Shown: positions 13,262 to 63,006 of the stretch, one piece after another
Layout: every line of letters starts with the position of its first letter
How positions within the stretch are numbered: the first letter of the stretch is position 1
Origin: Octopus sinensis
Taxonomy: Eukaryota
Length of the DNA: 64,000 nt
Reading direction: 5' to 3'
NCBI RefSeq assembly: GCF_006345805.1
Contig: NC_043014.1
Location: forward strand, 31,248,001 to 31,312,000
The notes under the pieces: model-generated
The model's database searches: none
The model's input: only the letters and a program-made list of their open reading frames with translations
What the model was told of the DNA's origin: nothing
Translations under genes and position numbers: made by a program

Positions 13262-13515
13262 CTAGTCTAGAATCACTTCAGATAACATAGGTTCATCATG
13301 AAGACCTAACTCCATATTTCTGAAGGCTGTCTCGCGAATTTCTTTCCTCATGGCAACTGTGTTTGTGGCACAGTGTGGTGTAATGATAACATTTGGGAAG
13401 TTGTAAAGCTTGTGATCTACTGGCAAGGGTTCGGGTGTAGTGACGTCCAGGGCAGCTCCTGCAATCCTTCTTGATTCCAGTGCATCAACAAGAGCACTTT
13501 GGTCAATGATATCTC
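13262..13515 (-). CDS. 2-hydroxyacid dehydrogenase copy A, coding exon 4 (DVTTPEP, TPH, stop)
   Basis: 254 nt, TTTAG acceptor, TAG stop; spliced product is 326 aa with an intact Arg/Glu/His triad. Confidence 0.93.
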
Positions 13516-14535
13516 CTAAATTGAAAGAATAAAAAGGAAAGAGGCAGTGATAGAGCGACAGAAATAGAAAAATCAATGATAGATGGGTGTCCACTATGCT
13601 CAAGATCGTCAAGGCTCAGGTCTCCACAGTGAAATCATTTAAACTATTTTCGAGCTGACCACTCACTGGTCATTTCCTCACCAAATGTTTTGTTGATATC
13701 GTGAGCAGTTTCAGCTGCTTTACATCCTTTTTAGAAGTTGAATAGCAAAATTGCTCAAATATCAGGCTTTGATGGTTCCATTTCAGATGATTGGAACAAC
13801 GGTAAAAAAATACCAATGTTAACTTATTGATGCATTTGGGCAAGTCTAAATGTGTATTATCAGACAATTGCAAAAATCCAGTACAAATTCTTTTTACTCA
13901 ACCTGGTATATATGTATATATGCACATATATGTACGCACACATAAGGTTTGTTCAAAAAGAAACTGAACATTTAAAACAGACTAACTGGTGCAATGTACT
14001 TGTTCCTGCAGTTCTGCATATGAATAACTTTGAGCTTCAGTGTAATAGTCACTTTGTGTTGTTGGAGAGAAGGATAGGTTGATAGATGTGGTAGAAGTAG
14101 GAATTAAGTTCTGACAGGGTGCAACTACTCATATGGAATGATTCAGTGAATAAGAGAGAGGGTATTGAAGAGATGAGAGGATCATGTGGATCTAATACTA
14201 TGCCTAGTTACAAAAGTAGTAAGGGACAGTAAAACATTAGTATTAAGGCAGGTCAATATTTCTCATTAGGTCATTTCATTCTGTGTTCTCTAATTCAGTG
14301 TTAAAGAAACCAAGAAATGAAATCCTTGAGACTTCCTATAACTATATACCAGTAATTAACCCTTTAACTGCCTGTCCAATATCATTAAATTCTTCACAAT
14401 CCTACCATTCCTTCTCTTCAAAGATCGTCACCTCATATCTTCAAGTTCCAATATCAAATCAGACGTTTTATTACTTGTCTATTTTCGTTTGTCATACATC
14501 CATAACTATTAGTGACAAGAAATTAAAGTACCTAC

Positions 14536-14714
14536 CTCTGGCAATATTGATTAACGTTGCTGTCTTTTTCATTGCCTCCAGTTCCTTGTGACTAATAAAA
14601 TGATACGTTTGTGGTGTCAAAGTACAGGTAATCACAACATAATCACACAATGGTAACATGTCCATCAAGCTACTATAAAACTGCGCATCCACTTTTGCTT
14701 CTTCTTCTTCGGAC
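14536..14714 (-). CDS. 2-hydroxyacid dehydrogenase copy A, coding exon 3 (catalytic Arg, INIARG)
   Basis: 179 nt, TTTTACAG acceptor, GTAGGT donor. Confidence 0.93.
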
Positions 14715-16351
14715 CTGTAAAAGAAACTGAGTCTCTGGAATGTGTGTTTGAAGTATAATATTTTGTTCTTATCATTTTGCATCTAATTTTGATATTATAA
14801 TTGATGATGGATTTACTGCTGGAATAAGAGTGGTGTTTGCAGTTAGGAGCACTTTCCAGTGCAAAGACTCAGGTAACATTCAGATATGGAACATGTGTTG
14901 TCAAGTAGGCAGACAGTTCAATCAAAGATACAATTCTTGCATAAGCACATACTTCAATAATGTGAAACAATGCGACCAAGAGATCCTGTGTTGTTGTTGT
15001 TGTTAATCAACAAGACGGGTAAGGGTGATTAGGTGATGGTCTAGGGCTTAGGGACAGGAGACCCCAGACCTTGGAAAAAAAAAACTTTGGTCGTCGTCTT
15101 GTAGTCGAAGGCTCTTCGTTGACGTCCGACACCACTGGGAGGTGGCCCTCGAAGTCACTGGAAATGGAGATCTCCAGGTCCAAATTCTTGAACGGCAGAG
15201 AGCTTATGTGTAATTGCTTGGTCTGTTATGAACTACAGCCAAATTTCTGTCATTGTAGTATCTTAAAAAAGGAAAGGACAGATTAAATAATGTAGTTGTC
15301 AACACACTCTCTGAATAAGAGATGGACTATTTTAGTTCTGATGTCTACAGAACTAGAGCTGACCTGAGATTAAACAATTGCTTAATAACTGAGTAGTTTG
15401 AACTCAGTCATGTAGTCACTAGTTCATGATCTTAACCTTATATTCATCGAGGCTGATACAGAAGAAACTATTTTAATTTTATATTTGTTGTTTTTTATAA
15501 CAGACTGAAAGAATGACAAGCATCGTTTGGGTGTTTTTACCCATAAATTTCTATAATTGTTGTTGTTCAGCTTCCGGTTATTCTGAACACCCTCATGTTC
15601 AAACGTTTTCTGTCTGTGACCGTTCTGGCTAGTAAGGTCCAATATTGGACCGTGAAACCAAATAACTAACTCATCATCATCATCATCGTTTAACGTCCGC
15701 TTTCTATGCTAGCATGGGTTGGACGATTTTGACTGAGGGCTGGCAAACCAGATGGCTGCACCAGGCTCCAATCTTGATCTGGAACAGTTTCTACAGCTGG
15801 ATGCCCTTCCTAACGCCAACCGCTACTAGAGTGTAGTGGGTGCTTTTTACGTGCCACCGGTACGGGGGCCAGTCAGGTGGTACTGGCAACGACCTCGCTC
15901 GAATTTTTTTACACATACCACCGGCACAGGTGCCAGTAAGGCGACGCTGGTAACGATCATGCTCGAATGGTGTCTTTTACATGTCACCGGTACGGAAGGC
16001 AGTTAGCCGTTCTGGCAACAATAACGCTCGGATGTGGCTCTAAAACATTTAATTTGTGTTTTTATAAAGCAAAAAGTGCTAATGAACTAAAAAATAATTT
16101 AAAGCTTCCTACTTAGGAGAAAATCGCGATAAGCGCAAGTATATGTTATTAGTTCCTATGTATGTTTCCTTGTGGTCGGTTAGAGCTCAGCATTGGCTGC
16201 TCAAAGCGCAGTTAAATGCAATGGATCAAGAGGGAAACGCTTTATTGCATTTTACTACAGTACTTATAAAGTTTATAAGAATGAAAAAAGAAAACAAGCA
16301 ATTCGAATTTTATTTCTGTTAAATCATTTTGTTGGTAATCTTTTGAAAACT

Positions 16352-16572
16352 TATTTCTTTATTACCCACAAGGAGCTTAACAAACAAGGACAGACAAAGG
16401 GCTTAAGTCAATTACATCGATCCCAGTGCGTAACTGGTACTTAATTTATCGACCCCGAAAGGATGAAAGGCAAAGTCGACCTCGGCTGAATTTGAACTCA
16501 GAACGTAACGGCAGACGAAATACGGCTACGCATTTCGCTCGGCGTGTTAACGTTTCTGCCAGCTCGTCGCCT
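16352..16572 (-). mobile_element. Family-1 SINE with a perfect 16-bp TSD (TAATCTTTTGAAAACT)
   Basis: TSD at 16336-16351 and 16573-16588. Confidence 0.93.
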
Positions 16573-60739: not shown

Positions 60740-60995
60740 AGAGAAATTTCTAAAAAATTCCGAGACACTACAATGTTCATCCTGATGCTGGATATGTTCT
60801 TGCACCTCTCTTGCCCTTCTTGCTGAGAATCACCCATAAAATATATTTGAAGGAATTTTGGTGATTCATTTGAGAGAAGTAGTAGAGAGTCAATCCGATG
60901 ATAAATCTGACCGTGGACCTTGAAAGTTTGCATGAATCCTGGCTCAGTTATATCTCTTGTCGCTCCAAATCATATCGTTTTTTCCCCACTTCTTC
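60740..60995 (-). mobile_element. Helitron Rep N-terminal fragment
   Basis: FGATRDITEPGFMQTFKVHGQIYHRIDSLL...PKFLQIYF. Confidence 0.85.
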
Positions 60996-62109
60996 ATAGT
61001 TAAAAGCAAAGAAGCCAGAAAAGATCGATCGCATTACAGTCTAATTGTCGATTCAAATGACTGAGGCTTTCCTTTCTCTGGCTCCATCGCTTCACTCCTT
61101 TTCTCTATGGTTAAGAGAGTGAAGGTACGTAGCTCAATGGCTAGAGGTATTCGGCCAACGATCGTAAAATCATGAGTACAATTCCCGGTGGTGCGCTGTG
61201 TTCTTGAGCAAGATACTCTAATTCACCTTGCTGCAGTCCACTCAGCTGGCAAAAATTAGTTGTAGCTGTAATTCAAATGGGCCAGCCTTGTCACATTCTG
61301 TGTGAGGCTGAATCTCCCTGAGAACTACATTATAGAATGTATGTCTGTGGAGTACTCAGCCATTTGTGCGTTAATTTTACGAGTAGACTGTTCCGTTGAT
61401 CAGATAAACAGGAACCACGTCGTCGTAAGCGATGGAGTGTCATTTTTTAAAAAGAGTGAAAGGAAAGGAAATGTTCCATATCGTAAGGCAAAAAATATCA
61501 AGTGTTTAGTATAAACAGTGAAGGCTAAGACGAAATAATTGCGTTTCCGTTGTGTAGTGACTTCGCCTGGGACTCACTCTCAGTTTGATAACAACAGCCA
61601 GCACATCAGTGTTTATCTGGGGGCTTGGCCTCCAGATCTGTGAGACCCATAAATGCCAAAATGAGTTGTAGCTGTAATTAAAAGGGGCCAGCCTTGTCAT
61701 ATACTGTGTGAGGCTGAATCTCCCTGAGAACTATGCTAATGGTATGCATGTTTGTGGAGTACTCAGCCACTTGCGAGTTAATTTTATCCTCGTGTGGTAA
61801 TGAAAAGTGAAAGTGACTTCCAATATTTGCTGTAGTTATTTGTCTTTGATTTAACAATGTGTCTGTGTATCTATGTATCAACTTTTCTTTCGATCTATGT
61901 ATCTACTGTCCCTCTCACTTTCTCTCTTTCTCTCTCACTTCCTCTGTATCCCATCCCTCCTTTCTCCCGCTTTTAATTTAACAATGTGTGTATGTATCTA
62001 TGTATTTACTTTTCTTTCGATGTGTGCATTAGTCTACTCCGAAAATACTGATAAACATTTTACCTCTCCCTTCAACGGTAGAAAAGTAACAGTAACATCC
62101 ACAGCTATT

Positions 62110-62360
62110 TGCTGAGAGATAGATAGATAGATAGAGAGAGAGAGAGAGAGAGGAGAGAGAGAGAGAGAGAATGTGTGTGTGTGTGTGTGTTAGAGAGAGA
62201 GAGAGAGAATATGTGTGTGCGTGTGTTAGAGAGAGAGAATGTGTGTGTGTGTGTGATAGAGAGAGAGAGAGAGAGAGAGAGAGAGAGAGAGAGAGAGAGA
62301 GAGAGAGAGAGAGGCAGACAGACAGAATTACTGTCAAACAGACAGACAGACAGATAGATA
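62110..62360. repeat. (GA)n/(TG)n/(GACA)n microsatellite
   Basis: Direct reading. Confidence 0.95.
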
Positions 62361-62630
62361 GGCAACATATCTCTCTTCAACCTTTTCTTCCGTCAACCTG
62401 TGAAGTGTAACACATACCACAGATACGTACAAAAATAAAAACAAAAAAAACTAAGCGTATTAATATCATTGATAATAATAATTATGACGAAGGAGCATTA
62501 GCATTACCTTTAATTCACACACACACACATAATGAAGGAAGACTTTAATCAATTAGGTATTAAAAAAGGAGACAAACAAATCCCATCGTTTTCTTTGTGT
62601 CTTAAAAATTAAAAGGAATCATTTACTTAC

Positions 62631-63006
62631 ACTGAATGATTTTCCTTGATATTGCTAATAACAGAGCCATTCCAAAATTGGCTGTAGTAACTCCATCCTG
62701 GGTGCTATGACCAATCCTAATGCCACGTGATTTAGCCCATTTAGTATCAACACTATTGAAACCAATGCCAATGAAGGAAATAACTTTAAGGTTTACTAAC
62801 TTCTCAAGTAATTCAAGGAATTCTTGGTTTCTATTTAGGTCCGACTGTACATACAAGCCAACAACCTTCTCACAGAGTGAAGGATTTTGTTCCAGTTCTT
62901 TGAGACTCACCACATTTTGTTTACGGAATACAACATTGAAGAAGAAGCTCTTAAAATCAGGCAATTTTTCATAAAGATGTTCACAAAAATTCACTACCAA
63001 AGCCAT
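62631..63006 (-). CDS. 2-hydroxyacid dehydrogenase copy D, coding exon 1
   Basis: 376 nt, ATG at 63006, pyrimidine tract plus AG 7 nt upstream, GTAAGT donor. Confidence 0.92.

Follow-up and report, generated by a model that had tools for sequence, protein, structure and literature searches.

Interlocus gene conversion in a tandem cluster of predicted 2-hydroxyacid dehydrogenase genes of Octopus sinensis

We analysed a window of 64,000 nucleotides from Octopus sinensis (RefSeq assembly GCF_006345805.1, contig NC_043014.1, positions 31,248,001 to 31,312,000 of the forward strand), in which a family of predicted D-2-hydroxyacid dehydrogenase genes, related to human GRHPR, is arranged in tandem. 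Three four-exon genes, here called A, C and D, lie on the minus strand with intact open reading frames (ORFs) and splice sites derived from the sequence (Table 1). All introns are of the GT-AG type, with phases 1, 2 and 1 in each of the three genes, and with these models the common exon phases and sizes described in a first-pass annotation of the window were reproduced. Searches of the window with exon peptides (tblastn) returned exactly three copies each of exons 2, 3 and 4, all on the minus strand, and four long copies plus a short one of exon 1 (match E-values from 1e-28 to 5e-84). Three of the long exon-1 copies are on the minus strand and one is on the plus strand, where it is split across two frames (25936-26303). 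The catalytic triad, said earlier to be intact, is Arg243/Glu272/His291 in C and D and 242/271/290 in A, and its alignment to R245/E274/H293 of human GRHPR (2h1s) confirmed this. The three genes are already predicted and named as separate genes in RefSeq: A as XP_029647907.1 (isoform X1) and XP_036366741.1 (isoform X2), C as XP_029647911.1 (identical protein) and D as XP_029647298.2, an O. sinensis protein 100% identical to D. No description of the cluster was found in the literature searched on octopus GRHPR-like genes and on the function of animal '2-ketogluconate reductase'.

In addition to the intact members, both of the exon-1 relics listed in the first-pass annotation, B and E, were found; its count of at least five duplications of exon 1 has to be lowered, since five copies imply at least four. 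Relic B is a nearly full exon 1, 89.6% identical to that of D, which retains a GTAAG donor and carries a frameshifting deletion of 13 bp. Relic E contains the last ~95 nt of exon 1, a GTAAGTAAATGAT donor and the start of intron 1, at 71-75% identity. It was recovered as a 24-residue tblastn fragment at 28424-28353, by blastn (74.6% over 71 nt, E=1e-8) and by alignment to the exon 1/intron 1 junction of B', the O. bimaculoides counterpart of B (71% over 207 columns). This fragment is the sole other copy of exon 1, and we took it to be the E of the first-pass annotation, which gave no coordinates for it. Searches with blastn (word size 7) and tblastn in positions 1-13200, 23000-32900, 44700-51900 and 63010-64000 revealed neither decayed exons 2-4 of B nor further relics.

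Gene A and relic B are arranged head-to-head, their start codons lying about 3 kb apart, and have 5' flanks (22887-23279 and 25041-25935) that are homologous and inverted. The 150 nt upstream of the ATG can be aligned in all four long exon-1 copies, with a divergence of 17-22% among the paralogs and of 8.6% between B and D. Therefore, the duplications took in the promoter-proximal region.

Table 1. Positions of the genes, relics, homogenised tracts and mobile-element features in the window
Feature	Position	Strand	Details
Gene A	13262..22886	-	exons 22886-22514, 21049-20875, 14714-14536, 13515-13262; 373/175/179/254 nt; 326 aa
Gene C	32962..44623	-	exons 44623-44248, 39161-38987, 37954-37776, 33215-32962; 376/175/179/254 nt; 327 aa
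Gene D	51941..63006	-	exons 63006-62631, 60514-60340, 54788-54610, 52194-51941; 376/175/179/254 nt; 327 aa
Relic B, inverted exon-1 pseudogene	25936..26298	+	tblastn, alignment to D exon 1, O. bimaculoides comparison
Relic E, decayed exon-1/intron-1 fragment	28244..28424	-	tblastn E=2e-4; blastn; B' alignment
C-D homogenised tract, C side	37460..38181	-	exon 3 and at least 290 nt of downstream intron
C-D homogenised tract, D side	54294..55032	-	same identity and intron-divergence evidence as C side
Alternative 5' coding exon, gene A isoform X2 (XP_036366741.1)	23305..23372	-	inside gag-like ORF 23256-23546
Mariner-type transposase fragment	53231-53704	+	PF01359 E=5e-13; intron 3 of D
Retroelement aspartyl-protease-like ORF	34696-35241	-	weak, below Pfam cut-off; intron 3 of C
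Dispersed short repeat copies	16349-16572, 35221-35451, 31511-31997, 55198-55334		70-89% identity; ORF translations recur as ...NWYLIYRPRKDERQSRPRWNLNSE...

For O. bimaculoides, three overlapping loci were merged into one region of 76.5 kb, oriented as the window, of which 14,340 positions are N and in which the truncated B' and D' exons all adjoin runs of N. Four units occur there in the same order, A'(-), B'(+), C'(-) and D'(-), so that the cluster is older than the split between O. sinensis and O. bimaculoides. Relic B is orthologous to exon 1 of B', with 6.6% divergence, and the comparison shows that the segment with exons 2-4 of B is missing from O. sinensis. Given the four units in the same order, relic B is all that is left of an inverted fourth gene of the ancestral cluster. 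At least two of the O. bimaculoides units, A' and C', are intact. The donor of B' exon 2 (about 29785 of the merged region) is AT and not GT, and the NCBI model of B' (357 aa) includes intronic junk and skips conserved segments; B' may thus be decaying in this species too, although the gaps prevent a firm call. XRCC1 is found downstream of A' as well, in a neighbouring gene with XRCC1_N and BRCT Pfam matches, making the two regions syntenic; in our window, 5' exons of an XRCC1 homologue (N-terminal domain) lie downstream of A at 8650-8597, 3062-2967 and 750-625 on the minus strand. Three consecutively numbered orthologues are annotated in O. vulgaris (CAI9737674 to CAI9737676), and the C orthologue, CAI9737675.1, has 397 aa with exon 4 represented twice, either a model artefact or an extra exon-4 copy. 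Argonauta hians possesses one copy only, which is 3 kb long, has exons of the same sizes (376/175/179/254) and lies among different neighbours. The old cluster of four members, in the order A(-), B(+), C(-), D(-), probably arose after or near the split from the single-copy Argonauta; in O. sinensis, A, C and D have stayed intact, B has lost exons 2-4 and carries its frameshift, and E is a scrap.

The NCBI gene range in O. bimaculoides that spans D' exon 1 to C' exon 4, lumping two units, might suggest one gene that uses alternative first exons in a mutually exclusive way. We consider this hardly credible: the protein of that lumped gene is encoded wholly by unit C', each of the O. sinensis genes has its own exons 2-4, good splice sites and a homologous 5' flank, and RefSeq lists the three separately. 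The reading was rejected on the complete exon sets of the units and on the origin of the lumped-model protein from C' alone.

Differences between the paralogs are unevenly spread over the exons. Exon 1 differs at 26 (A/D), 32 (C/D) and 34 (A/C) of about 125 residues, and paralog pairs differ at 1-3 of 59 residues in exon 2, 3-7 of 59 in exon 3 and 9-14 of 84 in exon 4; the counts made earlier by eye (about 27 for A/D and 32 for C/D in exon 1, with few in exons 2-3) agree well with these. Synonymous sites follow a mosaic of the same kind. The synonymous divergence (dS) among paralogs is 0.22-0.45 in codons 1-87 and 0.73-1.09 in codons 296-327; in codons 88-125 it is 0.08 between A and C and about 0.5 against D, and it amounts to 0.055-0.22 in exon 2, 0.09-0.32 in exon 3 and 0.11 in codons 243-295. 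By comparison, orthologue dS is flat along the gene. The proportion of synonymous differences (pS) among paralogs is 0.27-0.40 in the ends against 0.14-0.16 in the core (Fisher tests, p=0.002, 0.048 and 0.008 in O. sinensis and 3e-5 in O. bimaculoides), whereas between orthologues it is the same in ends and core (p=0.84 and 1). A lower synonymous rate in the core was rejected on account of this last result.

Nucleotide distances point in the same direction. In exons 1 and 4, where orthologues are 5-8% and paralogs 9-18% apart, sequences group by orthology, and paralog distance exceeded orthologue distance in 100% of the bootstrap replicates. In exon 2, sequences group by species, with paralogs 2.9-3.4% and orthologues 5.1-6.4% apart (7.0% for O. 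sinensis D against O. bimaculoides D' in the flank alignment); in the bootstrap comparison the distances are 0.039 for paralogs and 0.059 for orthologues, the latter being larger in 98.5% of replicates. The corresponding values in exon 3 are 0.041 and 0.052 (95.7%). Quartets of A and C from both species have, in the ends, 38 sites that support orthology and none that groups by species, against 5 and 6 such sites in the core, with no site of the third, homoplasy-type pattern (Fisher p=3.3e-5). In neighbour-joining trees, the ends pair the orthologues with bootstrap values of 84-99.8%, and the core gives a star-like topology. Finally, a tract shared by C and D that takes in exon 3 is 91.5% identical over 739 columns, compared with about 80% in other blocks, and its downstream intron is only 2.7-2.9% diverged, compared with about 20-25% for other alignable paralogous intron flanks.

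Taken together, the dS mosaic, the distances, the quartets, the trees and the C-D intron tract show that interlocus gene conversion homogenised about codons 88-295, partly after the species split. The converted core comprises the end of exon 1, exons 2-3 and the first two thirds of exon 4, and nearly coincides with the NAD-binding domain as placed by Pfam (113-293). Conversion has acted repeatedly on the NAD(P)-binding core and made its copies alike; codons 1-87 and 296-327, which make up most of the substrate domain, have escaped it. Assembly collapse or misassembly as the source of the core similarity was rejected, because the copies of exons 2 and 3 differ at 5-15 nt and stand in distinct intron contexts.

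Some results weigh against this reading and should be kept in view. A Sawyer-type permutation test of the longest runs in the coding sequence found no significant core tract, probably for low power (few variable sites, and tracts that are old and short), and its only nominal run, codons 35-54 of A and D, lies outside the core (P=0.023, uncorrected). The sites are few, with about 20-40 synonymous sites per sub-region and six species-grouping sites. The intron flanks of exon 2 are still orthologous (about 20% between paralogs and 7-10% between orthologues); conversion tracts there must therefore be short and nearly limited to the exon, which is unusual unless selection filters them. The gaps in the O. 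bimaculoides assembly cut exons of B' and D', and the codon models presented below rest on in-house code and have a saturated outgroup branch (dS > 1.4), which makes the outgroup ω unreliable.

All three proteins match Pfam PF02826 (188-191 bits; E=4e-56 for A) and PF00389 (44-47 bits) above the gathering scores. The closest solved structures by sequence are human GRHPR (E=3e-48), Thermus 2cuk, Pyrococcus 2dbq and the Bacillus 2-ketogluconate/glyoxylate reductase 9m0t, and the top matches by sequence and fold in the Protein Data Bank are GRHPR, archaeal and bacterial glyoxylate reductases, 2-ketogluconate reductase and HPPR. An AlphaFold2 model of D has a mean confidence (pLDDT) of 84, which is low only at residues 133-146, and shows a canonical β-α-β N-terminal domain (strands E3-7, E32-34 and E48-54, with helices between them); its best fold match is human GRHPR 2h1s over the full length (TM score 0.69, 32% identity). 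The GxGxxG motif is present as GMGTIG at 156/157. Judged from these closest matches, A, C and D appear to be GHRB-type D-2-hydroxyacid dehydrogenases, distinct from the canonical octopus GRHPR; the databases label their lineage 'probable 2-ketogluconate reductase' or 'glyoxylate/hydroxypyruvate reductase B-like'. The W-x-x-W-K-P-x-W loop and the I-G-S motif of canonical GRHPR orthologues are both absent, and a separate Octopus GRHPR with the Trp loop is represented by the peptide NGNWGLWKPMWILG... in an ink-proteome paper (PMC10142993). The βB-αD loop, LYHQRRQR, aligns with LYTGRQPR of GRHPR, conserves Arg185 and lacks the Asp of NADH-specific enzymes, a basic, Asp-less loop from which a preference for NADPH is predicted. 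Each copy would then be an active, dimeric, NADPH-preferring 2-oxoacid reductase.

Three features of GHRB enzymes are relevant to their substrates: a Gly-Ser after the catalytic His, which correlates with hydroxypyruvate preference (Matelska et al. 2018, PMC6303947), an Arg-X-X-Met motif in α5 in most members, and a Trp of the partner subunit that closes the pocket (PMC6303947). The positions of these two motifs, and likewise a missing Trp141, have been linked to substrate size and hydroxypyruvate preference (Matelska et al., PMC6303947). The octopus proteins depart from all three. They have PH-C-A-T (A and C) or PH-C-A-S (D) after the catalytic His, with a Ser only in D, and RKEI (A), MKEL (C) and AYEL (D) in α5; in the place of the partner-subunit Trp (Trp141 of GRHPR), an ungapped alignment sets PPELL against KPLWL, in a loop that is modelled with low confidence. 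The tandem family had been described as an atypical GRHPR-like dehydrogenase, a view which agrees with a GHRB-type family that departs from GHRB features at these places. Its suggested link to D-lactate metabolism found no support, and pyruvate is not usually a substrate of GHRB enzymes (PMC6303947).

Sixteen positions are paralog-specific and kept in both O. sinensis and O. bimaculoides, all of them within residues 7-102 or 298-325 and none in 111-295; for the C-terminal positions, where D' is cut by a gap, conservation was compared for A and C. At the Arg position of Arg-X-X-Met, A has R, C has M and D has A, and this recurs in O. bimaculoides, for D through its sister copy B' (RKEI in A', MKEI in C', AKEV in B'; D' is cut by the gap). 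At the position equivalent to Ser296, O. sinensis D has changed from Thr to Ser. The β3-α3 loop (residues 53-63) differs even between orthologues, and therefore its variation looks like fast drift rather than fixed specialisation. Since paralog-specific residues conserved between orthologues fall at the substrate-linked Arg-X-X-Met and Gly-Ser positions, a modest subfunctionalisation in 2-oxoacid preference among A, C and D is plausible, and the paralogs may differ modestly in that preference as the α5 motifs RKEI/MKEL/AYEL would suggest.

The first-pass annotation had proposed a diversifying enzyme family that acts on different 2-oxo acids. On this view, diversifying selection on exon 1, which encodes the substrate domain, would tune the paralogs to different substrates, and exons 2-3 would be kept alike by purifying selection alone. 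Amino-acid divergence is indeed concentrated in residues 1-87 and 296-327, in the catalytic domain, and the conserved differences at the Arg-X-X-Met and Gly-Ser positions speak for such tuning. Pairwise Nei-Gojobori ω (dN/dS), however, is below 1 in every exon and sub-region (0.06-0.96), being 0.34-0.63 for exon 1 of the paralogs. In codons 1-87 it is high for an enzyme, 0.49-0.96 between orthologues, with the top value in C against C'. Codon models were fitted to the unconverted ends with in-house GY94-type likelihood code, F3x4 frequencies and a fixed orthology tree. Model M0 gave an ω of 0.46, and a three-ratio model fitted better (p=7e-7), with ω of about 0.49 on the internal branches after duplication and about 0.88 on the terminal branches. 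Although M2a places about 5% of the sites at an ω of about 4, its comparison with M1a gave no significant positive selection (p=0.19 for both ends, p=0.12 for codons 1-87).

Selection on the protein cannot yield the mosaic of synonymous divergence described above, nor does it fit with exon 2 paralogs that are closer than orthologues, with a β3-α3 loop that varies between orthologues too, or with what is found in other animals: in 28 vertebrate homologues the ends have 58-67% identity against 69-82% in the core regions, showing that the same ends are the least constrained parts in this enzyme family generally. We therefore regard diversifying selection on exon 1 as improbable. The pattern that the first-pass annotation had itself set down as speaking for a conversion artefact, dN/dS below 1 with synonymous divergence also at the gene ends, is largely what was found. 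Its reading of the per-exon contrast by domain holds insofar as the divergent parts belong to the substrate/catalytic domain, lying outside the NAD-binding residues 113-293, and fails insofar as it called on diversifying selection. The higher rate at the ends after duplication may reflect relaxed constraint, and the excess divergence of exon 1 is explained by generic weak constraint, by this relaxation and by a comparison with exons that were homogenised.

Another possibility is that the copies are redundant and drifting, equivalent in function and kept for dosage or not yet lost, with conversion from a selected copy propping up the core while the ends decay neutrally. Relics B and E would show the usual fate of such copies: O. 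sinensis has already lost the function of one ancestral gene out of four, and in O. bimaculoides the counterpart of that gene has the AT donor at exon 2. The ω of about 0.9 on terminal branches and the 55-63% of end sites that fit an ω of 1 under M1a would suit this account, as would the aberrant annotated isoform of gene A, which starts in a gag-like ORF. On the other hand, M1a finds 33-42% of the end sites strongly constrained (ω0 < 0.03), the paralog-specific residues are conserved across species, ORFs, splice sites and triad are intact in all three O. sinensis genes, O. bimaculoides has at least A and C in intact form, and the O. vulgaris annotation includes close orthologues. We thus hold redundancy to be rather unlikely, albeit less so than diversifying selection. 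What we favour as the likely explanation combines a four-member GHRB-type cluster, conversion of its core, weakly constrained ends and NADPH-type reductases that possibly differ in substrate.

A stronger version of this explanation, in which selection bars conversion from the ends of the substrate domain and so keeps three distinct pockets (RKEI/MKEL/AYEL; Ala-Thr versus Ala-Ser) beside a shared NADPH module that conversion holds in step, seems to us doubtful. If it were true, octopods would have a trio of 2-oxoacid reductases of their own, each with another physiological substrate, within the animal '2-ketogluconate-reductase-like' lineage. The locus itself is an ordinary, already annotated tandem gene family with a clear gene-conversion mosaic.

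The window has a GC content of about 37%, is rich in microsatellites and contains short exon-like ORFs; scans for tRNA genes and Rfam families gave no matches in it. The introns of the paralogs are largely non-homologous and filled with repeats, among them the mobile-element remnants in introns 3 of C and D and a dispersed short repeat that is probably a SINE-like element (short interspersed nuclear element; Table 1). In isoform X2 of gene A, the alternative 5' exon is joined by a GT...AG splice to a cryptic acceptor near 22645, within exon 1, so that the protein lacks residues 1-82; this isoform is probably an aberrant transcript driven by a transposon.

Where one exon of a tandem family looks 'variable' and others look 'conserved', gene conversion can be the source of the contrast, and controls by dS and by orthologues are needed before diversifying selection is invoked. 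The octopus locus is a compact, well-resolved cephalopod case of concerted evolution as a mosaic at the level of domains, and it points to an uncharacterised animal GHRB lineage that extends from octopods to sauropsids. If the paralogs do differ in substrate, they would form a natural experiment in which Arg-X-X-Met and Gly-Ser could be studied as determinants of specificity in 2-hydroxyacid dehydrogenases.

Among characterised enzymes, human GRHPR (2gcg, 2h1s) and other GHRB 2-hydroxyacid dehydrogenases (2dbq, 2cuk, 9m0t) share with the octopus proteins the two-domain fold (TM score 0.69, 31-32% identity) and the Pfam domains, together with the GxGxxG motif, the Arg-Glu-His triad, the Asp of an A-L-D-V motif and the basic βB-αD loop. 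They differ in that the N-terminal ~60 residues of the octopus proteins align poorly with theirs by sequence; GRHPR, moreover, has Ile-Gly-Ser after the catalytic His, where the octopus proteins have Cys-Ala-Thr (A, C) or Cys-Ala-Ser (D), and the Trp-rich loop of GRHPR with its Trp141 is absent from A, C and D. The closest named relatives outside cephalopods are vertebrate, mostly sauropsid, predictions called 'probable 2-ketogluconate reductase' or 'reductase B-like', of similar length and 40-47% identity, which share EYFP...DVTG..GIIGMG.IGYK.A.RA.AFEM.(I/V)LYH.R.(Q/R)R and TPQT...MK.TATLINI.RG with the octopus proteins but, unlike them, keep (I/L)-G-S after the catalytic His. The literature searched contained no enzymology of the octopus or vertebrate '2-ketogluconate-reductase-like' members. 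Two homologues of 331 aa in Logan transcripts (SRR19578109 and SRR19578104; 45-47% identity) carry an unusual PHC(G)TNT after the catalytic His, suggesting that the Cys variant may be older than octopods.

The mosaic itself resembles the concerted evolution of tandem paralogs by interlocus conversion from which single domains escape, a pattern that is classic for many tandem families and has been reviewed for Caenorhabditis paralogs (PMC3966223), and with which it has in common a homogenised centre, divergent flanks, paralogs closer than orthologues and an uneven dS. In the octopus, by contrast, the tracts are broken up by long, non-homologous introns filled with transposons. It follows that conversion must have reached exon 2 and exon 3 independently of each other and over very short tracts, and co-conversion of an intron with its exon is seen only at exon 3 of C and D.

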